Source: Ramazzottius varieornatus | Taxonomy: Eukaryota > Animalia > Tardigrada | Length of the DNA: 64,000 bases | Direction of reading: 5' to 3' | Assembly: GCA_001949185.1 (NCBI GenBank) | Contig: BDGG01000012.1 | Location: 984,973-1,048,972 of the forward strand | In this document: positions 1 through 43,924 of the stretch, piece by piece | Layout of the letters: every line of letters begins with the position of its first letter | How positions within the stretch are numbered: position 1 is the stretch's first letter | Notes under the pieces: generated by a model | Told to the model about the DNA's origin: nothing | Databases searched by the model: none | The model's input: the letters and a program-made list of their open reading frames with translations, nothing else | Translations under genes and position numbers: made by a program

Positions 1-610
1 CTGTACCACGTTTCCGACTTCCAGCCCTTTTACCACTGGGGTTAATGTGCTGCGCCTGAGGGCTTCGAAGAGCCGGTGACCCGGTGACCTTGTCAGCTGG
101 TTGTCTCATAAGCTTAGGCTACTGTATGTTGCTCTATTTACGGAATTTTGATGTTCCTTTCCCGATAATTTTGATCGTTCAAGTCCAACATCCGCGATCA
201 TCCGTCCTCTACTATATGCTTATCTGAAACTGCTAGACCAGTTCACTGTAATCACTCGCTGTGCGCGCAGGAGCGGAATCTCTACCAAGCAACAGATTCG
301 CCATCTCCGTAATCCATATGGACAGGACCTAGGGCATGAAGAAAATCGCATAATCCTTCCCTTATCTTCTGTCCGTTAACCTTCTTCTATACGCTCGGGA
401 TAGCCATTCATCCCGGGGCATGTGTCTATGCACAGATCGGATTACCGTCACTGTTGTCGGCATTTTTTGTTGATTTTTCGGGACTGTTTCCGGCTGCCTC
501 ACATCCACAGCGGAATGGAGCGTTCCTAACTTGCATCGCCTAGCTGGCCGTAGCAGCTGTTGGACTGTTATCCACCGAAGAGCCCTGTCTAGAGAGGAAG
601 AAGTGGCGCG

Positions 611-1256
611 AATGAAACGCCTGCGACAAGGAATGTCCAAGAAATTCAGTGGACGGTTGTATACTGCGGAACGTCGTGTGGCGGAGGCGAACGCGTCCAA
701 CGATCCTCTTTCCGCCTGCAGCTCCGACCTGACGAAATTCGTGACCACGAAAGGACGGGAGATAACGCTCGAGTGTTTCCGCGTTACGCAGATTCGCGAA
801 AAAGAACCTCATGTTGTCGAGTGGATGTTTTCGTTGGTGGAGAGGAACATGAAGGAGCTGTATGAGCAGTGTTCGTGGGGATGGAATCCAAAAGCCAAGC
901 ATAACGAGATGACGGAATCAGATGCATTTTACCTTATAGCCAAAGACTACAAGAACTCAACCTTAACCGGTTTTTGCCACTTTCGCTTCGTTATAGATTA
1001 CGGAATCGAAGTCGTTTACTGCTACGAGCTGCAGGTGGAAGCTCAATACAGGTCCGAGCAGATCGGAAAGAGAATTATGGCCGTACTCGAAGCCTTATCT
1101 CAACAGTGGAAAATGAAGAAAGTCGTTTTGACGGTTTTACGCCACAATCCGAGAGCCATAGACTTTTACCTCCATGCCGGCTACACTTTTGACGAAACTT
1201 CTCCGACGCACGACGAGCCTGAACCGCATTTTATATTTAGCAAACCGACCTTTTAG
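611..1256 (+). CDS. NAA40: N-alpha-acetyltransferase 40 (NatD, histone H4/H2A N-terminal acetyltransferase)
   Basis: Intronless GNAT ORF with NAA40-typical segments 'NMKELYEQCSWGW', 'FCHFRF', 'YCYELQVE', 'KKVVLTV', 'DETSP'. First in-frame ATG is at 611; an upstream exon cannot be excluded. Confidence 0.9.
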
Positions 1257-2941: not shown

Positions 2942-3688
2942 CTAGGAAGTGGCGTCCTGCATATCCCATCGTTCCGTGTACACCTCGCATTCAGATATGT
3001 CTTTCAAGGCGGCCTGCACTCGCGATAAGAGGTTCTGGCAGCTTTCATGGGCTTCTTGGAAAACTTTCGTCGCGTTCTGGTTAGCTTTGCTAAGCTGCTC
3101 GATCGCAGCGACCTGCGGGAAGACCATCACGTTATACGAATGTCGATAGAAGATATTACTGTCAGTCGGTTAACCGAGTAAAGATGGTCAAACGATGAAT
3201 ACGACACTTACATCCGTTTCCGCTGTCTGGTCGTCGTTGGGAAGGCGATCGATGAGCGTATCCAGTTCTTTCACCGATTTTGCAATCAGCTTCGCGAACA
3301 ATAATGGAAGATCTGCGAACCAACGGCGCAGTATAATGATCAAGCATTCACTTATGTTCAACAAGGAGTACCACGTCACTAAAATCAGCGACTCACCTTT
3401 AGGCTGAAACTCTATGTTCTCGTTCTTTACGGGAACAGAGAATAGTCTTTCGTGGCCGGGTAGTATCGCGGGTTGCGCCGATTGTTGAAGAAGCCCAATG
3501 GCATTGCACATGTGATCCGCAATCTACAATACTAGCGAGTTAACTAACTAATTACAAGAGCGCAACGGCAGAAAGGAACGCAAACCCAAGCTGTAGCTAA
3601 GAACTGCGATTGCTCCAAACAAAAAACGCGGAGAGCTACTTCATACCTGGTTTATTTGGTCCTGAACTTGGGTGATACGATCGCACAT
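2942..3688 (-). CDS. MED21: Mediator subunit 21 (SRB7)
   Basis: Four exons (3688-3647, ~3523-3397, ~3312-3212, ~3112-2942) give [28 protein letters not shown]...LFAKLIAKSVKELDTLIDRLP...LLSRVQAALKDIS, which matches MED21. Confidence 0.92.
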
Positions 3689-34000: not shown

Positions 34001-36702
34001 GAAATTCGGATAATTGGCAGGCCATGAACGCCAAATCTCAAAAGGGAGAACTGGTCGTCTTGATCTTCTTCTGACCGCACTGATGACTAAAAAAAATTAC
34101 CCCAGGCTCGGCTTCGATAGACAAGACTGTCCCCAGTGCTCCAGTTTTTTTCTAAACGAATACCGTGCAGGTGTCTCGCGCGAAGAGACGAAACACGGAA
34201 TTTCACCAAAACCACCCGAAACGGTAGAAAAATTTCCAGCGTTCTGGGGTTTTGCTGACCGAGGTACATGCAAACAAAAAGACGCAGACCCGAAAGACCA
34301 AAAGCTAAAACTGGGAGGTGAATAAAACTGAGTGATTGTATACACAAAGAGGACGGTCGTACGCAGAGTGGTAAAGTGGCGCACGGTATCAGGCAACACT
34401 ATCGAAAACTTGCGCCACTTGGGAAACAAACCCGACCAGATTATCTTCCCAAATGGTGCACGTTTTGGGCGTTCTAGGCTGAACGCGTGCGCCACTTGAA
34501 AGCGATCTTGTGAGCTTTTTTCGGCGAGCTCCCTCGAAAGCGTACGTCACCAATCAAACAAACAGTATTTGACCACAACATGGTACAGTAACTTGCAGAG
34601 TTCCCGAGACCATGAACGGATACTTCAAGGACTTCAACCAAACAGTCGCGGCTTGGAGCGAACTCCAGGACCAGTAAGAGATTCATAGCCGACATTTTTG
34701 GGGTTTGGTTTAGATTTGGTTTTTGCAGAAAAGTTTTGGCGTTCGCGTGCTTCGTCGGCTTTCAAATCAGCGGACCAGAAACCATACTTTGCTCAACCGG
34801 ACAGTGGATACCACCAGTCATGCCAGAATGTATTCCGGCTTCCTGTCATCTACCCGAACTTCACAACGGAGGTTACGATGGAGGCTATCGCAGTGGATTT
34901 GTCGTCGGCCATAACTCGATAATTGGCTTTCATTGCCTGGACTACTTCTGGAGGTCTCCCAGTGAGTCCGTCGTCCGATGTAACCTAGGGATCCTCGCAC
35001 CCAAAAGCCCCGAGTGCCTCAGTACATCATCGACGCAAGCACCTGCACGCGTGAACGACCTTCGTCGAGAAGTCGGCAAGAAAACAGAGTCCAGAAACAC
35101 TACCGTTGTAATCAGTGAAAAGAGCCTTCTTCCTCCCGAAGTAATACCCACCACTAAAAACTGCTCATTAGGAAACCTTGACCATATCGTAGTCTATCAA
35201 GCAAACACCAAGCTGAATGTGTCTTCCTCGAACATCTTCCCGGACAACACGGAGCTTCTGTTTCATTGTGAACATCTGGGGCTCTACCAGCTGATAGGCT
35301 CGCCGCGTTTGATTTGCACGAACAACAGATGGGACGGTATGGTACCAAGATGTGAAAGCTTGACGGGCTCTGCAGAGCCTGCCAGCTTGCCGCCCGCCGT
35401 CCATTACCGCATTACATCGGGCATCATAGGCTTTAGCAGTCACGGCGAGCTCTTGGTTTACCCTAGTACCAACCTGCTACTGGACTGCGAATGGCCTCGG
35501 CAAAAGGACACGCCAAGCTGGACGGTCTCACATTCGTTCCGCCGATATTCGAAAGGCTGGTCCCAAACTTTACTTGATTCTTTCGTCATGCACTCGCATA
35601 CTCACCTGTTATGATAACTCTGCAAGCTATAGTATGCAGGTGCATGAGAGATGGACTGATATTTATGGTGTGTCTTTTCCAGCTTGGGTGGATCTCGACA
35701 AACGAAGCGTTTACCGGCTATCAATCCTTCACGCCGTAGAAGAAGACTCGGGCGTCTTCACCTGTCTGACACCTCGTGGTAAAGCTCACAGTATTATAAT
35801 CAAAGTGCGCAGCGTGGAGTGTCCGGTAATCGTGCCTTCGATCGCTGGTCTGTCGACCAACACCTCTTCAACGCGAATGGGCACCAGCGTGGCCTTTTCC
35901 TGCATGAAAGGCACGACTTTACACGGACCAAAGACAATACTGTGCCTTCCCACTGGCTCATGGTCAGATGTGCCGCCGACGTGCACATCTGCACTCTGTC
36001 CAGTGATCAATCCTACAAGCAAGCATTTGAAGGTCTATGCGATTTCGCGGGAGCCCGGAAGTACCGTTGAGTTCAGCTGCATGAGCGGTACGCGTTTGCT
36101 TGGAAGATCTTCGGCCAAGTGCTTGACGGATGCAAGCTGGTCCGCGGACGTCCCACAATGTGAAGGTAGGAGTACCAGATTCCTTCTTGTGCTTTCTTCC
36201 AGCAAGCATGTGCTGTACATTGTACGTGTAAACTGATACTTTGTACTGTAGAACTTTACTGTTCTGCACCGGAGCCTCCGCAAAATGGCTGGCTATCGAA
36301 ACGATCGTCGTCGTTCAAGGTGGGAGAGAAGCTCGAAGTGTTGTGCAAAGCTGGCTACGCGGTTGTCGGAGGCGATAGTCAGCTTCAGTGCGATGAGAGC
36401 GGAAACTGGTCCAGCGAGACGCCTGTGTGCTCACCAAGCTGCAACTATCCAGGTAATCTACAGCACATCGCCAAACTACAATCACTCGCTTTACATCACT
36501 TGACGCCAATGCCATCACTTTTACAGGTCATCCAGAAAACGGCCGGATAATTCTTCCATCATTTCTCAAGTTTTATTATGCTACGAACGAAAGTATAACG
36601 TTCGCATGTGAAGACAGTTTTACTCTCAGAGGCAGCAATATCATTTTTTGTACGGAAAATGGACGATGGTCAAGTCGACTGCCAACATGTACGATCTCAT
36701 AA
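28100..36702 (+). CDS. LEV-9/Hasp-like secreted scaffold: WAP domain, 8 CCP (sushi), furin site, further CCPs and an Ig-like domain
   Basis: Signal peptide exon at 28100; WAP exons ~28884-28996 and ~29124-29167 (CLRPCVTDNDCKGRRKKCLCDGDCGMSC); eight CCPs to ~33074; exon 33474-33530 encodes RRMKR; more CCPs; Ig-like 'EEDSGVFTC'; stop at 36700-36702. Confidence 0.85.
29347..29473. repeat. Palindromic CAAGTGGCGCA element, long form
   Basis: Core hairpin plus outer arms GACTTGGGCAA / TTGCCCACGTC; closely related to the copy at 33250-33372. Confidence 0.8.
32111..32307. mobile_element. MITE-like element in a LEV-9/Hasp-like intron
   Basis: Imperfect ~35-bp inverted repeats GACGAGAAATTATGGCACAGTAACAGTTATGGGA / TCCCATAATTTTTACTGTACCATAATTTCTCGTC. 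Confidence 0.65.
33250..33372. repeat. Palindromic CAAGTGGCGCA element, long form
   Basis: GACGTGGGCAAA...CCAGATCG...GTGCGCCACTTGGG...TTTGTCCACGTC. Confidence 0.75.
34365..34540. repeat. Two tandem palindromic CAAGTGGCGCA elements
   Basis: AAGTGGCGCAC...TGCGCCACTTGGG followed by AATGGTGCACG...CGTGCGCCACTTG; the right flank resembles 49560-49615. Confidence 0.75.
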
Positions 36703-36880
36703 TTCAATACTCAACTTGTTAAAAAGTAGAACTCAACTATATCGCACCGCTGGCTCGCTATAAACCACCACAAAAAGCTAAAGATGCCTCCTGCGTAATG
36801 AACTCACGTGTTCCCTGGGGTCCATTCCAAAGGCACCTGCAAAAACAGAAGTTTGATCCATCGTCAATGGCGGAAACTGC

Positions 36881-37010
36881 AATTGTGAGTCCTTTAGCGA
36901 AAGAATGGCCCCAAGTTGAACCATCCTATGTCTTATAGGACACTTGTACTTTCGGAAAAGATCAGGAATCCCACCAAATAGATCGGAGGGATTCCGCCTA
37001 AGATTCCGTT
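36881..37010 (-). ncRNA. Box H/ACA snoRNA (target unassigned)
   Basis: Hairpin 1 (cggaa/ttccg lower stem, ggaatccc/gggattcc upper stem), H box AAAGUA, hairpin 2 (gtcct/aggac; ggatggtt/ggccattc), terminal ACAauu. Confidence 0.75.
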
Positions 37011-37159
37011 CCCATAGAGGAAAGGTTCAACTTACGCACATGTGCTCAAACAATGTCCACGTAAGTCTACATGCGCAACAACACTTCCGGTTCTGCAACA
37101 AAGCAACCACTGGTCAACATAAACTCTTTGACGCTTTGCCATACCAGAACATTTGATAA

Positions 37160-37226
37160 AGCTTCAGTTAGCGTAAGTAAATTCATGGTTTATCACATAG
37201 CAAAAGGGCAGTAGTTCATCATTTCA
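37160..37226 (-). ncRNA. Box C/D snoRNA; first guide GCCCUUUUGCU probably antisense to 28S 'AGCAAAAGGGC'
   Basis: AUGAUGA (37222-37216) ... CUGA (37167-37164). rRNA match is from memory. Confidence 0.8.
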
Positions 37227-37381
37227 CCATTAATTTGGAACAAAAGGAATCGGTTGTACTCACGTACCTGTATTCCGTGCTGAATCAGCTAATGCTCAAA
37301 GGACTACAAGCCTGGAACCAAAAGAACGCGAATCAGCTCTGAGAATTCTGTCCGTATTACTAACACCAAGAAACAAGTCCA

Positions 37382-37472
37382 CAAGATCATAAGGGTGTGT
37401 GATAGTGCTCAAATTACAAGTCCTCATACCGGTAAAGCGACCGATAAGTCCCAAGTTTTTCGAATCATGTCA
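37382..37472 (-). ncRNA. Atypical snoRNA candidate with degenerate boxes
   Basis: Occupies the snoRNA position of its intron. AUGAUUC...AUGAGGA...AUGA. Carries UCGCUUUACCGG (antisense to 28S CCGGUAAAGCGA) and UUUGAGCACU (antisense to 18S AGUGCUCAAA). Confidence 0.45.
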
Positions 37473-37629
37473 ATCAACTGTTTCCTGTTTTTCTAGCAGC
37501 AGAACTCACCGGTATATCGACCGTTACCGTAGAAGTCTTCCGTCCGTGGACGCTCAACCTACAGAAGACGAAGCGTCAGATCCCTCGCACACCCGCCACA
37601 CCGAAAACAAGACGATTTCCAACAGGGAA

Positions 37630-37700
37630 GAGTTTCAGTATAGCGTATATATTTGTCAACCAGGCATGCAGGTCTTGGGTTAGTTCACTCATCATGCACA
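37630..37700 (-). ncRNA. SNORD54: Box C/D snoRNA, U54/SNORD54-like (18S Gm644-equivalent guide)
   Basis: AUGAUGA (37695-37689) ... AUAUACGCUAUA-CUGA (D box 37638-37635). The guide is antisense to conserved 18S AUAGCGUAUAU and the D+5 position pairs with G, as in human U54 (AUACGCUAUUCUGA). Confidence 0.88.
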
Positions 37701-37860
37701 TTCCAAGGACACTCAAACTACACACGAAAACAGGCCAGAAACAACCTACTTCGCTTCTTCCTCGCTACATCAACCTGTCGTCCGGGTCAATACCTAATGG
37801 AGAAAAACAGAACATTTGAGTTGTCAGGCATGCATTTTGCCTATAGACCGAAAAGAAAAG

Positions 37861-37928
37861 AATGTTCAGTCGCCTGAAAGTTGGCATCACTGGCAGTCAA
37901 TGCATGTAGGTTGGATCATCATAAAACT
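37861..37928 (-). ncRNA. Box C/D snoRNA (target unassigned)
   Basis: C AUGAUGA (37922-37916), D' UUGA, C' GUGAUGC, D CUGA (37869-37866), about 72 nt from the 3' splice site. Confidence 0.8.
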
Positions 37929-38077
37929 TTCCGAAGCGAAACGCCTAAATTAGTTTCGCTCACCTCTGTCCGAACACCGCTGTTAAGGTGCCATATCGAG
38001 ACGTAAGTTCCATCCACCTACAACAAACACTGGTCAACATATCCTTCATGGTCGCGGAAAGGGACTGTCCATTAATG

Positions 38078-38146
38078 AAGCTTTCAGATCCCGGTAAAAC
38101 AATACGGTCACGGTATATCAGCAACTTTACATTCATCATATACTTT
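38078..38146 (-). ncRNA. Box C/D snoRNA; D guide UUGUUUUACCGG probably pairs 28S CCGGUAAAGCGA (two G-U pairs)
   Basis: C AUGAUGA (38139-38133), D' CUGA, C'-like GUGACC, D CUGA (38087-38084). The D' guide AAAGUUG may pair 18S CAACUUU, but the match is short. Confidence 0.82.
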
Positions 38147-38303
38147 AAGAACGATTTCAGTGATGTGAAGAGGACAGACTCACTTCGAGGAGAAGAACAG
38201 CCGGTGTCCCAACTTCCGGTCTGGTATCGCAGATTTATCCACCTGTAAACACTACATCGTCAGAACAACCATCTCCACTCTGCTTTCAAACCAAGCACAT
38301 CGT

Positions 38304-38396
38304 AAACAGTGATCATACAGCTTATATTGGTGGGTAAGCTGGTTCGTCAGTTTTGAATCGGATGGAGGTGCAAAGTTATAATCATTCACCCTGTTT
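38304..38396 (-). ncRNA. Box C/D-like snoRNA with variant boxes (target unassigned)
   Basis: Terminal stem aaacag..gtga/tcac..tgttt, C AUGAUUA, D' CCGA, C' CUGACGA, D AUGA, about 70 nt from the 3' splice site. Confidence 0.6.
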
Positions 38397-38555
38397 TCTA
38401 ACAACAACCTCTCAAACCAAAATGACTTACCAATTTAAAACGAAACGCTTTCGAAGTACGGATCCCATCGGGGTAAGATGACTCTGTAAATAACAACTTG
38501 ATATATGCGCAGCATGCAATTAAGAGATGTAGTACGAAGGCGAAGTTAACCAAAG

Positions 38556-38640
38556 ATTGGGTTGGATCAGTTCGCCCTAGTGTGTAATCACAAGCATTCA
38601 GAGGATTGACAGATTAGTGTTTTTCATCACCACAACCAAT
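38556..38640 (-). ncRNA. SNORD110: Box C/D snoRNA, SNORD110 (HBII-55)-like (18S Um1288-equivalent guide)
   Basis: C GUGAUGA, 14-nt guide AAUCUGUCAAUCCU-CUGA antisense to 18S AGGAUUGACAGAUU, C' GUGAUUA, D CUGA, long terminal stem. Confidence 0.9.
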
Positions 38641-38789
38641 ACAAAAAACCTACGGAAAACTGCGGCGCACACATACCTAGATAGCAAAGTGGAACAGAAT
38701 TCAGCCGAGAACTGCCATCCTGAAACAAGAGATAGAAGTTAAATCGCCCCAAAAACACCACAACGTCCAAATTCGAAACGCGAGCAGCT

Positions 38790-38857
38790 AATCTCAGTTC
38801 GCCCTAGAGTGTCGACAAAGAATAATCCGTGGACTGAAGTGATATTCATCATGAACA
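38790..38857 (-). ncRNA. Box C/D snoRNA; D' guide CACUUCAGUC antisense to 28S GACUGAAGUG
   Basis: C AUGAUGA (38852-38846), D' CGGA, D CUGA (38797-38794). Its D guide CUAGGGCGAA is shared with the neighbouring snoRNA. Confidence 0.85.
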
Positions 38858-39046
38858 AATGCGCTAACGAAAGACTGTCAACTTCTGTTGAGGCGAAGAT
38901 TCTTACCTTTAGAAGAAGACTGAGCCGCTTTCAAAGAGGCAGTCACGGAATGCGCATCGCAGAACGTGGGCACAACCTGCAAAGAACAAACTGTCACAAA
39001 CATGATTGTCAGTTTGTCATTCTGGATATTCAAGAGCAATGTCGGC

Positions 39047-39169
39047 AACAGCCCTATAGCAGATCAGCCAGAAAAGCCGTCAGCTTACACAAGTCAACAG
39101 TTACTCTGTCCATCCTTAGCACCTTGCCGACAGATAGGAGTGTCGCCAAGCGGCTTAAAAAGATGGAGG
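39047..39169 (-). ncRNA. Box H/ACA snoRNA; 5' pocket probably guides the 18S U in GAGCC-U-G-CGGCUUAA (ACA5/snR85-type site)
   Basis: Hairpin 1 tccatct/ggatgga and cttggcgaca/tgtcggcaag with pocket strand UUAAGCCG, H box AGAGUA, a weaker hairpin 2, and ACAuug 70 nt from the 3' splice site. Confidence 0.75.
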
Positions 39170-39320
39170 TGTCCGAAAGCTAAGCTATCATTAGCTATGC
39201 TAGCCACTTACACGGTTTGTTCCGTTTTCCGCCATCCACCTCGCAGACCGAAAAAGCCTGCAAACAGCAAAAAACTTCAAAGAAGACCTCCAAGGTATAC
39301 AGTCGGGAATGGCTGTGAAA

Positions 39321-39402
39321 GTAGCTCAGAGCGTTAGAGGTATTAGAACGAGAAGATTCAATCAAGAAAGATCAGTCTAGACAACGTTCTGTCATCATAC
39401 AC
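39321..39402 (-). ncRNA. Box C/D snoRNA; guides probably antisense to 18S UCUAGAUAAC and (C)GUUAGAGGU
   Basis: C AUGAUGA (39398-39392), D' CUGA, C' UUGAUUG, D CUGA (39329-39326), short terminal stem. Confidence 0.85.
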
Positions 39403-39554
39403 TGGGTGAACTGGCAGAAAGGACTTCAACTGTACTCTTACCGAAAGAGCCAAATTCAGCGCAAAGGTTTCCGTCAAGTCGGTTCTGTAAGGAAAACATT
39501 CCATGGTCACTTTCCTCACACTGGAAGTTACGGTTATCAAGTAAGAAAGCATCG

Positions 39555-39628
39555 AGGTTTTCAGTGAAAATAAACCACTCGTCACAAACATCAGACTGGG
39601 GCGGTATACTTCTTCATCCTTAAATCCT
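39555..39628 (-). ncRNA. SNORD31: Box C/D snoRNA, U31/SNORD31-like (28S Gm4166 / yeast Gm2619-equivalent guide)
   Basis: UACCGCCCCAGU-CUGA, identical to the recalled human U31 guide plus D' box and antisense to 28S ACUGGGGCGGUA. C' GUGACGA, D CUGA, variant C box AGGAUGA. Confidence 0.9.
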
Positions 39629-39662
39629 TGTGAACTCTGCAAACGCTGCTCAACCTTACCGA

Positions 39663-40314
39663 TCAGCGATAGAGCTTCAAGTGGGCAAAGTGTTGCTGCA
39701 CTGTCTTTTTCTTGTATGGCTTGACTGCGAGGCAAGTTGGAATGTTTTCGGGCTGCTCGATCCAAAGCTTGTGCTCCACGCTGTGCAACTTCAGCTTTTC
39801 GGCCAGATCGTGGAGAACTTTCTCGTCAGCAGCCTGTGAAAACAGCAAGCGTCAATCAACTGACTCAAAGCAGCCATCAATCCACCTGAAATATTGTGCA
39901 GGATGACTCTTTCCTTGAACACACTTTCAGAAATAAGTGGTATCAACTGTCATGCAGACCATATGAAACACAGGCATGTCTCGATCTGCATGCATCAAAC
40001 GCAAATTACAACATCATAGTTGAGAGACCATCCAGCCGGGAAAAGCCGATAAGACCTTCAAGACCCACTTCGGCCTGAACAGATAGATATTTGTCAGGTA
40101 TGACGTCTCATGAAAGGCTCACCTTCAGAACGCACTTGTGCATCCTGTCCAGGTCTGTAAGGTAGTTTCGGGTTTCGGCATCGTCTCGGAAGAGATGCAT
40201 CACTGCCGTCGCAGCATGGCAGCCTTGCGCAATCAGGGCTCCAGTGGGCCATTTCAGATCTCCTCGGATGACGATGTACTGGATCATGTAGTCCTCTTCT
40301 TCCCCGGCAGCCAT
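39663..40314 (-). CDS. PTRHD1: Peptidyl-tRNA hydrolase domain-containing protein 1 (PTH2 family)
   Basis: MAAGEEEDYMIQYIVIRGDLKWPTGALIAQGCHA...MHKCVLK / AADE...HKLWIEQPENIPTCLAVKPY...LKLYR*. Coding intron 40122-39834; probable 5'UTR intron at about 40450-40337. Confidence 0.95.
39922..40021 (-). ncRNA. SNORD16: Box C/D snoRNA, U16/SNORD16-like (18S Am484-equivalent guide)
   Basis: AUGAUGUUGUAAUUUGCGU nearly matches recalled human U16 (AUGAUGUCGUAAUUUGCGU). The guide is antisense to 18S CGCAAAUUAC. Long internal hairpin between D' and C' as in U16; D CUGA at 39930-39927. Confidence 0.9.
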
Positions 40315-41128
40315 CGTGCTCTGCTCCCTCCAGAACCTACGAAAACAAATTCCCAGAGTGCCAGATGCACCACGTGGAATCTTCGTCGAGAAGAGGAACG
40401 TGGAACGCCGAACAACTGCCATATTTCAAAATCTGAAGACTGGTTCATACCTGCCCAGCTGGAAGTGGGAGGAGCAGTAGGATTGTTTTACAGAGTCGTA
40501 CTGTCCAAGTCGCCGTATTTAACGATTTGTCCGAGGAGGTCTAACATTGTAACTAATACAAAGACCGCAACCTCTCGGCGCTTCACACGGTGAACCTATT
40601 CCCCTTAAGAAGGCGTTCAACTCGTTCTGATTGGTCTACAAATCATAGGCCCGCTCCATACGTCTCCAGTTTTGATTCTTGATTGATTTGTCAGAAAAGG
40701 ACATTCGCGACTACATCTCCGTGTGCCAGCAAGACAACTGTCTCCTTTCAGGTACCGTGAAGTCAACTTCGTATGTAGGAGGATGGGAGATTCAACAAGC
40801 ACCGGATGCAATAATCTACGGGAGCGCAGGTGATGGTCTTCGCGTTGACGGCAGGTGAGTGCGAGGTGGACGCTAATCTCGTAAAGTTTACTTTCGCAGC
40901 GATTCTGCTCATGTGCTTTTGCAGGCTTCAAAGTCCAAGCTCCGGCTGAACCATCTTGCCTGCACTTACTCTTGCAGCGTTGGTTGTTCGTGTGTGTCGA
41001 TTCGGACATGAGGAACACGTGAAGGAACAAGTGCAGTGCATGTCACCGGGTGGATTCCGAACGTTTCCTGCGACTGGTAAAAGATCATCGTCGTCGCTCA
41101 GAATTTAAATCCTGCTGGAAAGCTCGCC

Positions 41129-43924
41129 ATGGACAAGTTGTTTATCTCGCACGGTGGACTGTCGTCGCTATGCTTCGATAGGAACGCATTCTTCCAGGTC
41201 AGAATTGCAGTACTCAATATGGCCAGAGTGGTGCGTATAGATGCATAGCTTAGTCGGTGGCCACCATTCGCCAACCTGCTGTTTTTGCTTGCAGGACAGT
41301 TTCAACGTGGACTCCTTCCTGGGCACACATACGCAACGTGGCATAACGTTAGAAGTCCTGAAGGATGATCTGGCAACATACAGGAAGATACTACAGTCAG
41401 CACTTGTCCAGTTAATTGACAGAGAATATGTGGATTTCGTTCACTTATCGTCCAGCTTGGTAAGGTAGTAACACTTGTTCGTTCCCTCGAATTAGAGCTG
41501 TCCACAGTTACTGTACTCCCGCGATACACACGCCATACTTCCCTCTGTATTAGGAAAAGTAGTACTGCAAGTAAAAAAGTGACGAAGTGGCGGAAGATTC
41601 CTCTTTAGAGTACAGCTTTTCGACTGATTATTGATTCAATAAAGTTCAAATTTTCTGCCCCCGGGAGGTGCACATTCCTGACGTACGTACGAGTATGGCG
41701 TGTGTATCGCGGGAGTACAGTACTTCCATGTGGCTGACGTGCGATGATCTACGTGCAGGTGGGACTTGATAAAGGTATCGAGAAACTGAAGGCGCCGGTG
41801 GAAGACCAGCTATCGCGGCTGCAGGTAAACGACACTCGTGTTTCCTTTTGCATTGGTCTCTTCATTAGAAACTATTAATAGAATCTATCAATTGTCGTTC
41901 ATAGGACTGCTTGCTGAACGTGTCGTCATACGTCAACAGCTTGAACTCCAAGCTACAAAGAAGGAGGGCGATAGAGGCTGAAAAGAGGAGCCTGACCTCG
42001 CTGACGACCGTCATGGTCTGTATGGAGAAGGTCGTCCACCTAGACCGACGTCTTTCCGAAGCGCCTTCCAGCCAAAGTCGCTTGCCTATCCTGTACCGCT
42101 TTTCCGACCTGCTCTCAAGAATATCGCGGGAACGCGGGATGGTCGAGAAAACTTCGTGGTACTCTGCAGCCGAGGAGCAGCTCAACCTGATGGACCAGTG
42201 TTTCGATAAATTCTTGTCGGCAGACCTGCTGGACGCTTTCCGATCAGCGGATGTCAAAGCTTGTCACACCTACTGCACGATATATGGCCATCTTGGAAGA
42301 ATACCTCGAGCTAGAGAAATCGTGGCGACTAATTTAATTCATCCGATACTCTTATCAGTAAGACTTGCTTAGTCAACCAAATGATTTCCAGTCTTTATCG
42401 AAAACGTTTCTGATGTTTCTTCCTTCCTTGGCAGGTTGTAAGAGAGAATGGATTCAAGAAGGCATGTTTCTCCGTCCTTTTGGACGACCTCCTAGCAGTG
42501 GTGGAAGAACGATTCTACTTCCTAGTTTACTTCTCAGAAGTGGACTTCGTTTTAGGGTCTTTATGGACCTGTTTAGTTAGTCTGCTGTGTGAAGACAGCC
42601 TGAACGTCCACTTTGTCCCAGACCGAGCCGAACAGTTCCGGGGAAACTACTTGGCAGCTAAGAGTTTTCTAGATCGCTTCGTTCGGTTGTACAGCAGTAA
42701 TCAAGAAGAGTTCGCCGAAGCGTTCTGGAAGCACCCCGCCACGAAGACCTTCATGGATAAATGGTCACTTCCGGTCTACTACCAAGTCAGGTTCCTGGAG
42801 ATCGCCACTCCGGTCGAGAAGGAATTTGGAAAGCCTATCCAACGCTTGAACAACACTGAAAAGGTACTTGAAATCTGTCTTGTAATATATGGTTTTGGTC
42901 TAGGTTCTCTAGGAATATCGACCGTTTTAGGGAAGTATCCGGCTGAGTATGACGGAGGCTGTATGGAACGCCATAGAACGGTGCTGGAGCGATGAAGTCT
43001 GCTTGCCTGAGCTCATTCACCGGTTCTGGAAATTGACATGTCTAATACTGGCTCGGTATCACGCTTGGTTGAAGCAACTGGACACTGGGCAAGCGGAGCT
43101 GTTACCTGATATCCTGGCAGACCTGAGCAGCCTCCAGTTGCGGGCCGTCACTCTACCTTCAGAGCACGTGAAGAATTTCCTAGGTACCGATGAGAATAGG
43201 ATGGCGGTAGTCAGCGCGGTTCTCACTGAAAGCATAACCGATGCACTGAAACCTCTGAAAGATGTCCAACGCGAGCTTTTAGAACGACTGGCTGTTCTCG
43301 CCGCCGAACAGACGATGGATATCGTCAAGGCAGTGCAGGAGATTCCTCGGATGTACAGACACACTAACCGTGATGTGAGTATGGCATTGGTCTTCACTTT
43401 CTGTCCTTACGCTAACCTTGTCTTGGTTTTTCTGTCTTAGACGCCAACGGCTCATTCCGGATACGTGGACGACGCCTTCGCCGTCCTCACCGGCAGACTG
43501 AGCTCTATAGCAGAACTTGATGCGGAACAGCTGCAGTCTGCTTACGACATCGCGACCGTCCAAGTAGTGAAACGCTTCTGTGGTTTAGCTTCTGACTTAC
43601 TGGACGCGGTAAAACGGATGGAGGGAAGCCTCAAGAAGCTGAGGAAGACTCGCGCAACAGGCTCTGAGAGTACTGGTGGGCTCAGCGATGACGATAAGAT
43701 TCGTCTACAAGTTGCACTAGATGCAGACCGAATGATTTCATGGGTATATCCCATAGTTCGAATTCAGTTTATGTTCATGTAATGTAAGAACGGAAGAACT
43801 ATGTCAATTGACGGTTAGTACTACATTTCAGATCCAACGATTGAATGCCAGCGGAGACATTCTTGATGAGCTGAGCAATGTGAAAAGAAGAACGGTAACA
43901 GACAAACAAGAGCAAGAGTCATGA
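41129..43924 (+). CDS. COG2: Conserved oligomeric Golgi complex subunit 2
   Basis: 'LCFDRNAF', 'FNVDSFL', 'LVQLIDREYVDFVHLSSSLVGLD', 'KWSLPVYYQVRFLEIA', 'HRFWKLTCLILARY', 'EIPRMYRHTNRD', 'GLSDDDKIRLQ'. Confidence 0.93.
41511..41720. mobile_element. MITE (Tc1/mariner-type) in a COG2 intron
   Basis: Perfect 29-bp terminal inverted repeats CTGTACTCCCGCGATACACACGCCATACT, flanked by TA on both sides. Confidence 0.85.

Follow-up and report, generated by a model that had tools for sequence, protein, structure and literature searches.

In the non-coding multi-snoRNA hosts UHG/SNHG1, GAS5 and Drosophila Uhg, each intron carries one snoRNA, placed a constant distance ahead of the acceptor, the exons are short and unconserved, the guides include a mixed set of C/D units directed at rRNA, and the ORFs are short and unconserved. 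Vertebrate UHG carries U31. Fusion of a non-coding host with a coding gene is known from the SNHG3-RCC1 read-through, in which the U17 snoRNA introns lie in the 5'UTR; introns on this 5' side are without consequence for NMD. In human, TAF1D and EIF5 are protein-coding snoRNA hosts, and NMD acts on their RNAs with an intact ORF (Lykke-Andersen et al. 2014, PMC4233243). The UHG-like C/D clusters of Neurospora crassa are polycistronic with one snoRNA per intron, at distances from the 3' splice site that resemble those of animals; their hosts are alternatively spliced and have ORFs of 159-267 bp with little coding potential, and the 3'UTR snoRNAs ACA10 and ACA16 are single exonic/UTR units and not intronic arrays (PMC2780460).

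Based on the analysis of a 64-kb window of the Ramazzottius varieornatus genome, we conclude that RvY_15742 is very probably one RNA polymerase II gene that serves both as PTRHD1 mRNA and as a UHG-type multi-snoRNA host. The locus shares with UHG/SNHG1, GAS5 and Drosophila Uhg the single snoRNA per intron, the short unconserved exons, the mixed C/D rRNA guides and the fixed distance to the acceptor, and it also contains a U31 homologue. In contrast to those hosts, its transcript opens with an intact, conserved, single-copy ORF, and the array lies wholly in the 3'UTR of a coding transcript. The intact ORF also sets it apart from the N. crassa clusters, with which it has in common the one-snoRNA-per-intron layout, the alternatively spliced host and the animal-type spacing from the 3' splice site; its 3'UTR units form an intronic array, unlike ACA10 and ACA16. 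Like SNHG3-RCC1 it combines a non-coding host segment and a protein-coding gene in one transcript, but in RvY_15742 that segment comes after the stop codon. As with TAF1D and EIF5, being both coding and multi-snoRNA host blurs the boundary between coding and non-coding hosts; however, the NMD-sensitive TAF1D and EIF5 forms are alternative isoforms, whereas the main transcript assembled for PTRHD1 is the one with the 12-junction 3'UTR, and no regular chain of 12 snoRNA introns wholly downstream of the stop is reported for the human genes (PMC4233243).

Features of the RvY_15742 locus (positions are those of the window)
Feature	Length (nt)	Position	Strand	Content
PTRHD1 exon 1		40123-40552	-	5'UTR and CDS 40123-40314; Pfam PTH2, E 3e-11
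Coding intron	289	39834-40122	-	U16-like C/D unit 39922-40021; D box end 93 nt from acceptor
PTRHD1 exon 2		39660-39833	-	stop TGA 39663-39665; Pfam PTH2, E 9e-10
3'UTR intron 1	175	39485-39659	-	U31/SNORD31-like C/D unit 39560-39624; variant C box AUGAAGA
3'UTR intron 2	184	39258-39441	-	C/D unit ~39322-39403; C and D boxes canonical
3'UTR intron 3	235	38977-39211	-	H/ACA unit 39037-39169
3'UTR intron 4	187	38720-38906	-	C/D unit ~38790-38857, by boxes
3'UTR intron 5	193	38484-38676	-	C/D unit 38563-38635; C, D', C', D boxes
3'UTR intron 6	188	38243-38430	-	variant C/D candidate ~38305-38394; boxes and flanking stem
3'UTR intron 7	166	38018-38183	-	C/D unit ~38080-38144, by boxes
3'UTR intron 8	170	37794-37963	-	C/D unit ~37862-37927; C, C', D boxes
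3'UTR intron 9	191	37559-37749	-	U54-like C/D unit ~37631-37700
3'UTR intron 10	198	37312-37509	-	variant C/D candidate ~37383-37473
3'UTR intron 11	175	37093-37267	-	C/D unit ~37160-37227, by boxes
3'UTR intron 12	203	36837-37039	-	H/ACA unit 36881-37005; ACA 36884-36886
11 internal 3'UTR mini-exons	43-70	within 37040-39484	-	joints from RNA
Mini-exons, first six		39442-39484, 39212-39257, 38907-38976, 38677-38719, 38431-38483, 38184-38242	-	
Mini-exons, last five		37964-38017, 37750-37793, 37510-37558, 37268-37311, 37040-37092	-	
Terminal exon	277	36560-36836	-	AATAAA 36572-36577; poly(A) addition at 36559/36560

The RNA evidence consists of assembled contigs from two independent studies (runs X1 and X2) together with oligo-dT cDNA (X4); these contigs are assemblies and not single molecules, and overlapping transcripts can be merged in them. 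An initial annotation, made from the sequence, had predicted a strong donor 3 nt past the PTRHD1 stop and, from there, 12 minus-strand introns of 166-235 nt. This observation was confirmed: the donor (TGA, TCG, GTAAGG) is spliced, and all 12 introns are GT..AG and are removed as predicted in both X1 and X2 contigs, with the junction 39660/39484 and the 11 downstream junctions present in the two studies. The junction of the coding intron, likewise GT..AG on the minus strand, is found in X1, X2 and X4 contigs. A 1323-nt X1 contig extends from the 5' region across the two coding exons and the 12 3'UTR junctions to the terminal exon, a 908-nt X2 contig joins the coding exons to the 3'UTR junction chain, and in both studies the contigs that link exon 1 with the array show no branches. 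The proposal of a UHG-like host fused behind an intact PTRHD1 ORF is supported by these contigs, in which the coding exons are continuous with the full series of 3'UTR junctions.

The primary transcript extends over approximately 4 kb, from 40552 (the 5'-most cDNA contig end at the locus) or further upstream to the poly(A) site at 36559, and contains 13 introns, of which one is coding and 12 follow the stop. The spliced, polyadenylated product is approximately 1.44 kb long; its 120-codon ORF is intact, and the 12 exon junctions of its 838-nt 3'UTR lie between +3 and +561 nt relative to the stop. The introns (166-289 nt if the coding intron is included) compare with 70-74 nt in two neighbouring genes. 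Exons of 31-70 nt without a conserved ORF had been predicted; the internal exons in fact measure 43-70 nt, and in the spliced 3'UTR the longest ORF has 61 aa.

Each intron contains one snoRNA-like unit, and our tally of eight canonical C/D units, two C/D candidates with variant boxes, two H/ACA units and one U16-like C/D unit in the coding intron reproduced the predicted one. Guide elements of 10-14 nt at the canonical position pair with universal rRNA core sequences in the genome's own 18S and 28S. The intron 1 unit matches SNORD31 with 36.7 bits (curated cut-off 40; E 1e-5) and an identical guide, and its 13-nt guide pairs with LSU 3015-3027. The coding-intron unit, with SNORD16/Afu_514 matches below threshold, has a 10-nt guide that pairs with SSU 435-444. 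Perfect pairing with the SSU was found for the D guides of introns 2 (11 nt, 901-911) and 9 (11 nt, 594-604) and for the D' guide of intron 5 (14 nt, 1235-1248). The guide and D box of intron 9 align with the Rfam snoU54 consensus; the intron 5 unit gave weak snoR14/snoU43 matches and has one D guide in common with the intron 4 unit. In introns 4, 8 and 11 an antisense element follows the C box and pairs with LSU 1735-1745 (11 nt), 2220-2229 (10 nt) and 3092-3103 (12 nt), respectively, with weak sR10/sR5 matches for the last, and the D guide of intron 7 forms 14 bp (12 Watson-Crick, 2 G-U) with LSU around 1232.

For introns 6 and 10 the units are defined by variant boxes, and fit to the spacing rule was part of the reason for choosing their D boxes. 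In the intron 10 candidate (C box AUGAUUC, D' and D both AUGA), 12 nt that lie one base ahead of an AUGA box are perfectly antisense to LSU 1231-1242, adjoining the target of the intron 7 guide. The intron 6 candidate (C box AUGAUUA, proposed D box AUGA) gave no significant rRNA guide in the guide scan and is the least certain of the set. We read CTGAC 38259-38263 in intron 6 and CTGAT 37332-37336 in intron 10 as branch sites. As for the H/ACA units, intron 3 (H box AGAGUA 39102-39107, ACA 39040-39042) has a hairpin-hinge-hairpin-ACA fold with z -2.05 and weak SNORA70/snoR639 matches, and intron 12 has a canonical two-hairpin fold with z -4.04, equalled by 0 of 200 shuffles, and weak SNORA69/SNORA64 matches.

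A strict scan of both strands of the window, requiring a canonical C box and 11 nt of perfect rRNA antisense beside a D/D' box, gave three matches, all in the array and on the minus strand. In the Rfam search no family reached its gathering score; with E-values, snoRNA-family matches were obtained, all sub-threshold and all on the minus strand (SNORD31, SNORD16, snoR14/snoU43, SNORD73, snoU54, SNORA70 and SNORA69/64). On the plus strand the only matches were two weak ones to unrelated families, SMAD5-AS1_3 and mcrA. Since the strict-scan matches are confined to the array and the Rfam snoRNA-family matches all lie on the minus strand, the snoRNA anatomy exceeds chance. Compared with shuffled guides, the scores of introns 1, 2, 5 and 7 were above the 95th percentile and that of intron 9 was at it. 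The D box-acceptor distance is 73 ± 5 nt (66-83 nt in ten introns, in two of which the variant D boxes were chosen partly by spacing), and the D boxes lie some 50 nt before putative branch sites of the CTGAC type. The snoRNA 3' ends, first placed about 45-100 nt (mostly ~70) from the acceptor, lie 44-83 nt from it in the 3'UTR introns (C/D units 66-83) and 93 nt in the coding intron. Terminal stems were not stronger than those in shuffled flanks. Contigs internal to the coding intron (39875-40047), intron 3 (39049-39201) and intron 6 (38268-38424) are only suggestive of mature snoRNAs.

At the 3' end, an X4 contig carries a 22-nt non-templated tail at 36559, approximately 17 nt beyond the AATAAA, which is the sole canonical signal downstream of the stop; neither AATAAA nor ATTAAA was found between the stop and this element. 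Isoforms besides the fully spliced form exist: an X4 contig (40552-40122/39832-39382) retains 3'UTR intron 1 and ends in 14 non-templated A at 39382, and intron 12 is also retained in some X2 and X4 contigs. For the uncoupling of the two outputs that the initial annotation suggested, by NMD or by a choice between poly(A) addition and splicing, the low-depth contig that retains intron 1 is the one hint. It is possible, but we consider it unlikely, that the protein is made mainly from a minor proximal isoform of this kind, with intron 1 kept and an early end, with the spliced RNA being a snoRNA by-product cleared by NMD. Besides the X4 contig, this would fit with ten junctions more than 55 nt past the stop, with the presence in the genome of UPF2, UPF3, Mago nashi and an SMG5-7-type EST1 domain, and with the degradation of the intact-ORF TAF1D and EIF5 RNAs by NMD in human (PMC4233243). 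However, no poly(A) signal accompanies the proximal end, which lies within the intron 2 C/D unit and comes from one contig with a depth of ~6. The fully spliced form was assembled without difficulty in both studies, at contig depths similar in order to those of the neighbouring genes or higher, although depth is a poor measure here.

Much less probable are two overlapping genes, with a separate UHG-type non-coding host that has its start in the last exon or the coding intron of PTRHD1 and is spliced from the post-stop donor; PTRHD1 mRNAs would then end elsewhere and the 1323-nt contig would be an assembly merge. Such merges do occur, as in X2 record 10, where the plus-strand neighbour is fused with the terminal exon, so transcription may also start within exon 2 or the coding intron. 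Against this, use of the donor 3 nt past the stop puts at least some last-coding-exon sequence into every array transcript, no canonical poly(A) signal lies between the stop and 36577, the exon 1-array contigs are unbranched, and among the contigs listed none starts within 39450-39900, including the interval 39450-39600.

RvY_15742 is a 120-aa PTH2/PTRHD1 protein to which the locus is 100% identical, with an upstream ATG at 40422 in frame with the CDS. The organism is a tardigrade, rather than a mite or tick as first supposed; the protein has 63-66% identity to orthologues of another tardigrade, bivalves and a nemertean. The ORF is intact, its C-terminus aligns with the ends of the orthologues, and both PTRHD1 and the array are single copy in the 55.8-Mb genome, where no second PTRHD1-type copy was found. 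That the ORF is a decaying relic in an effectively non-coding host heading to a GAS5/UHG state, as the short ORFs of UHG-type hosts and the 13 snoRNAs that far outweigh 120 codons might suggest, is hardly credible, given that each exon clearly exceeds the Pfam PTH2 cut-off, 23 of 23 columns invariant across nine orthologues are retained, the identity to distant phyla is 63-66%, the stop sits at the conserved C-terminus and no other copy exists.

For RvY_15742 as a single gene, the anatomy and established snoRNA biology suggest that mature snoRNAs are derived from the array, in which each excised intron would yield one snoRNA by debranching and exonucleolytic trimming, giving a predicted set of 11 box C/D and two box H/ACA RNAs. 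The fixed D box-acceptor distance is consistent with C/D snoRNP assembly being coupled to splicing, and the guides would direct 2'-O-methylation or pseudouridylation at conserved positions of the rRNA core. As a single transcript would have both roles, one promoter would set the outputs of both the protein and the snoRNAs.

Based on homology searches that were run exon by exon, RvY_15742 was assigned to PTRHD1 in the PTH2 superfamily by its full-length PTH2 domain and its orthology to proteins carrying that name. The annotated product, a hypothetical protein of 120 aa from Ramazzottius varieornatus, was 100% identical to the first coding exon, which identifies the animal as a tardigrade rather than a mite or tick. 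The two exons together covered positions 2-115 of the PTH2 profile (Pfam PF01981). The best named relatives were the PTRHD1 proteins of Paramacrobiotus metropolitanus (P0003), Ruditapes and Lineus with 63-66% identity, while the relative P0002 was 81% identical. Every invariant column of the alignment is retained, and the stop codon lies at the conserved C-terminus. The searched genome (55.8 Mb in 200 contigs), in which the window spans 984973-1048972 of contig C12, holds a single PTRHD1-type copy, RvY_15742, and two PTRH2-type genes that are distinct from it. An upstream in-frame ATG is found at 40422 with no stop before 40314, and its use would add 36 residues rich in Arg, Ser and Phe, for a total of 156 aa against 120 in the annotation. 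The 5′UTR also holds two out-of-frame upstream ATGs.

To describe the transcript, the assembled contigs of four public sequencing runs were placed on positions 36200-41200. On the minus strand only TCG separates the stop codon TGA (39663-39665) from a GTAAGG donor, as the initial annotation had read it. The 12 junctions that were predicted behind the stop, including 39660/39484, were all present at the predicted positions, together with the coding intron, in contigs from each of two runs of different studies (X1 and X2). All junctions read CT..AC on the plus strand and therefore GT..AG on the minus strand, and as the contigs are spliced, runs X1 and X2 represent RNA. The 3′UTR introns 1 to 12 measure 175, 184, 235, 187, 193, 188, 166, 170, 191, 198, 175 and 203 nt, and were rightly described as two to three times the local size, compared to 74 and 70 nt for introns of the two neighbouring plus-strand genes; the coding intron (intron 0) has 289 nt. 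The exon chain had been described as free of a conserved ORF, and the longest ORF within the spliced 3′UTR has 61 aa, but the internal 3′UTR exons range from 43 to 70 nt and not from 31 to 70 nt as first given.

The 3′ end was located with run X4, a cDNA library made with oligo-dT and carrying a vector-like adaptor, in which a 22-nt non-templated tail was found at 36559, about 17 nt past an AATAAA that is the only one within 3.1 kb downstream of the PTRHD1 stop. With the furthest cDNA end (40552) taken as the transcript start, and with lengths, ORF sizes and junction distances computed on joined exons, the spliced RNA has a computed length of 1439 nt, consisting of a 5′UTR of 238 nt, an ORF of 120 codons (156 from the ATG at 40422) and a 3′UTR of 838 nt. 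Junctions follow the stop at +3, 46, 92, 162, 205, 258, 317, 371, 415, 464, 508 and 561 nt. The locus has one promoter region and 13 spliced introns and makes one polyadenylated RNA in which an intact ORF precedes a 3′UTR with 12 junctions, and the gene model, known here from its 120-aa protein alone, probably needs to be extended by this 12-intron 3′UTR.

A further transcription start within exon 2 or the coding intron, which would give the array a transcript of its own, is very improbable. It gains some ground from the fact that contigs can merge overlapping transcripts, as seen in X2 record 10, which unites the terminal exon with the convergent plus-strand gene. However, a single contig of 1323 nt (X1 record 1) extends from 40422 to 36549 and takes in both coding exons and all 12 junctions, and a contig of 908 nt (X2 record 12) links exon 1, exon 2 and the array. 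Moreover, the donor lies 3 nt past the stop, so that any transcript of the array contains coding-exon sequence, and no AATAAA or ATTAAA was found between the stop and the terminal signal. The observation made in the initial annotation is confirmed, and its interpretation, a UHG-like host fused behind an intact PTRHD1, is supported by the contigs that span the coding exons and all 12 junctions to the terminal exon.

Other isoforms of the transcript exist, with retention of intron 1 or of intron 12. An X4 cDNA contig (depth about 6) retains 3′UTR intron 1 and carries 14 non-templated A at 39382, within the C/D unit of intron 2, 10 nt past its C box and with no poly(A) signal nearby. This end could belong to an oligoadenylated intermediate of processing or decay; an alternative 3′ end and an artefact are the other possibilities. 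Intron 12, which hosts an H/ACA unit, is often retained, and one X2 contig is unspliced over 36807-37063. An abundant X4 cDNA contig (36559-36973) starts inside the H/ACA unit, retains intron 12 and ends at the poly(A) tail; with its H/ACA 5′ part and poly(A) tail it is reminiscent of RNAs that combine a 5′ snoRNA end with a 3′ poly(A) tail.

The host gene overlaps both of its neighbours (36250-36836 and 40449-40552). The convergent plus-strand neighbour, with an intron at 36450-36523 and sushi-like repeats in its coding region, has terminal-exon sequence in common with the host. The divergent plus-strand neighbour (intron 40851-40920) starts at or before 40449, within the PTRHD1 5′UTR, which suggests a bidirectional promoter. 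Additionally, two runs of study P6 that are labelled as other organisms (X12 and X13) contained about a quarter of the 31-mers of this stretch, a share as large as that in RNA runs from the source species. Either they come from very close relatives, or the samples were mislabelled or mixed.

Each of the 13 introns carries one predicted snoRNA unit. For C/D units we looked for a 5′-proximal C box (RUGAUGA) and a 3′-proximal D box (CUGA) with 55-130 nt between them, and for H/ACA units for a hairpin, an H box (ANANNA), a second hairpin and an ACA 3 nt from the 3′ end. Box analysis and folds gave the same count as the initial annotation, namely eight canonical C/D units (introns 1, 2, 4, 5, 7, 8, 9 and 11), two variant C/D units (introns 6 and 10), two H/ACA units (introns 3 and 12) and a U16-like C/D unit in the coding intron. 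Seven units have an exact RUGAUGA C box and CUGA D box, and those of introns 0 and 1 have one C-box mismatch each. The variant C boxes are AUGAUUA in intron 6 and AUGAUUC in intron 10, and the D box was read as AUGA in both. The reading of the intron 10 AUGA as a box variant is supported by a 12-nt perfect antisense to LSU 1231-1242 that stops one base short of it. The intron 6 unit, for which no significant rRNA guide was found against 18S and 28S, is the least certain. In introns 6, 8, 9 and 10, CTGA motifs at a distance of 17-33 nt from the acceptor were rejected as D boxes and are better read as CTGAC/CTGAT branch sites, since the motif recurs there in other introns; at least six of the introns have CTGAC, TTGAC or CTGAT at that distance upstream of the acceptor. 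A search for C/D terminal stems gave flank pairings of only 3-6 bp, no stronger than those of shuffled flanks.

In the whole 64-kb window, the Rfam check that had been proposed gave no match to any family at gathering threshold. In E-value mode it gave sub-threshold matches, and those to snoRNA families were all on the minus strand, one per intron. The best was SNORD31 (36.7 bits against a cut-off of 40, E 1e-5) with the same guide as the consensus. The coding intron matched SNORD16/Afu_514, and the two guides of the intron 5 unit matched snoR14 and snoU43; the other matches were to SNORD73 and, over guide and D box, to snoU54. The guide segments are identical or near-identical to the family consensus (SNORD31, SNORD16, snoU54 and other named families), and the matched units are likely functional homologues that fall below formal family membership. 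X1 contigs internal to the introns are at most suggestive of stable small RNAs. The predicted products would measure about 60-95 nt for C/D units and about 125-135 nt for H/ACA units.

Coordinates, targets and properties of the PTH2 matches, predicted rRNA guides and H/ACA units of the PTRHD1 locus (SSU and LSU positions are those of the animal's own 18S and 28S)
Feature	Position	Strand	Remarks
PTH2 (Pfam PF01981) match, exon 1	40123-40314	minus	E 3e-11
PTH2 (Pfam PF01981) match, exon 2	39666-39827	minus	E 9e-10
Guide target, intron 0 (coding)	SSU 435-444		U16-type site
Guide target, intron 1	LSU 3015-3027		U31-type site
Guide target, intron 2	SSU 901-911
Guide target, intron 4	LSU 1735-1745
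Guide target, intron 5	SSU 1235-1248
Guide target, intron 7	LSU 1229-1238		around 1232
Guide target, intron 8	LSU 2220-2229
Guide target, intron 9	SSU 594-604
Guide target, intron 10	LSU 1231-1242		adjoins intron 7 target
Guide target, intron 11	LSU 3092-3103
H/ACA unit, intron 3		minus	hairpin, H box AGAGUA, hairpin, ACA + 3 nt; z -2.05; weak SNORA70/snoR639 match
H/ACA unit, intron 12		minus	hairpin, H box AGUACA, hairpin, ACA + 3 nt; z -4.04; weak SNORA69/SNORA64 match

Guides were defined as antisense stretches of at least 10 nt that end 1-2 nt before D or D′ and pair with the 18S or 28S rRNA of the same genome. Perfect or near-perfect guides of 10-14 nt to the 18S or 28S core were found in introns 0, 1, 2, 4, 5, 7, 8, 9, 10 and 11, and their targets are universally conserved core sequences. 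The 2′-O-methylation sites predicted from the guides are SSU 597, 904 and 1239 and LSU 1232, 1234 and 3020, along with a U16-type site in SSU 435-444. Plain 10-mer rRNA matches numbered 20 in the introns against about 11 expected in shuffled introns; as such 10-mers arise by chance, we gave evidential weight only to matches of 11-14 nt beside a box. Four anchored guide scores exceeded the 95th percentile of shuffled guides, and that of intron 9 equalled it. A strict scan for a canonical C box with an 11-mer guide beside a box, which recovers 3/11 C/D units in the positive control, gave three matches on both strands of the whole 64-kb window, all within the array. At BLAST sensitivity the genome contains the array as a whole only once, so that the animal probably has no other genes for these guides.

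A fixed distance between D box and acceptor is established for intronic C/D snoRNAs of vertebrates and flies and has been linked to splicing-coupled assembly. In the array, all ten 3′UTR introns with C/D units have their D-box end 66-83 nt from the acceptor (mean 73, sd 4.7), and the range is unchanged for the eight CUGA-box units alone. The fixed distance of intronic C/D snoRNAs to the acceptor is also referred to in PMC2780460.

Some further likenesses were seen among the units. In the U31-like unit, the D-box guide UGGUUUAUUU (39561-39585, minus strand) is complementary to positions 679-688 of ITS58S in the L004 rDNA unit, at the 3′ end of 5.8S and the start of ITS2, and its words are also found in the consensus that Rfam gives for C. 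elegans ceN63; the guide may be a conserved one directed at 5.8S/ITS2. A 19-nt stretch is common to the C/D units of introns 4 and 5 (38794-38812 and 38567-38585, 95% identical); it comprises the D guide and D box and resembles the Rfam snoU43 consensus. As a guide to SSU around 1017 this stretch was rejected, the match being only 8-9 bp and not significant, and it counts as an orphan guide, or one that pairs weakly, present in two copies. Introns 7 and 11 have in common an 18-nt tail (38024-38041 and 37104-37121, 94% identical) over the TTGAC branch-site region before the acceptor, a likeness that hints at intron-plus-unit modules arising from duplication. Introns 6 and 10 were also considered as paralogues, but their alignment was unconvincing.

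In the proposed mechanism, each excised intron would be debranched and trimmed to yield a snoRNP, and the spliced RNA would be translated into PTRHD1. With an exon junction more than 50-55 nt past the stop as the criterion for EJC-dependent NMD, ten junctions (+92 to +561 nt) lie beyond the limit, and the genome encodes UPF2, UPF3, Mago nashi and an SMG5-7-type EST1 domain. Contigs of the fully spliced form were readily obtained in two studies, with a depth of the same order as or above that of the neighbours, depth being a poor measure here. We tentatively propose that this is the sole PTRHD1 mRNA, which constitutively carries ten junctions at over 55 nt beyond the stop codon and still accumulates. 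Either tardigrade NMD would ignore 3′UTR exon-junction complexes, or the mRNA would be deliberately throttled, with transcription setting the level of 13 single-copy snoRNAs and decay that of the protein. The locus might then be a natural hard-wired coupling device and, in a living animal, an intermediate between snoRNA hosts that are coding and those that are not, a reading that we hold to be possible rather than probable.

Hosts of multiple snoRNAs are usually either coding genes, with the snoRNAs in introns of the coding region, or non-coding genes of the UHG/GAS5 type, of which the spliced RNA is discarded. The array has the same layout as UHG/SNHG1, GAS5 and Drosophila Uhg, with one snoRNA in each consecutive intron of a spliced polyadenylated RNA. 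However, these hosts are defined by the lack of a conserved ORF, whereas RvY_15742 has an intact PTH2/PTRHD1 ORF of 120 aa and only its 3′UTR is ORF-poor. The UHG-like clusters of Neurospora (PMC2780460) are similar in layout, and here too the conserved ORF sets the RvY_15742 transcript apart. Human hosts such as TAF1D and EIF5 are the nearest concept. The locus is an unusual, well-anchored gene structure and not a new class of system.

The arrangement was put forward as one not known to be described for PTRHD1, and a literature search, of partial coverage and no proof of absence, likewise returned no regular multi-intron snoRNA array lying wholly within a 3′UTR, nothing on PTRHD1 as a snoRNA host and nothing on tardigrade snoRNA genes. 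A metagenome scan for PTRHD1 relatives gave 43 loci of unknown eukaryotes, all with at most 64% identity. None had an Rfam snoRNA or a strict C/D scan match, which is a weak negative given the 3/11 recovery of the scan in the positive control and the many short 3′ flanks. As the window itself lacks a gathering-level match, Rfam is unusable as a negative test at other loci.

The locus places a complete UHG-type array of 12 introns past the stop codon of a conserved, single-copy, translation-related gene. It also provides 13 snoRNA candidates with predicted rRNA targets, the first such set with an experimental anchor for R. varieornatus, whose snoRNAs are absent from the literature searched. It offers a test case for whether 3′UTR exon junctions trigger NMD outside vertebrates, for the uncoupling of protein and snoRNA output from one promoter, and for the origin of non-coding hosts from, or their fusion to, coding genes in a compact genome.
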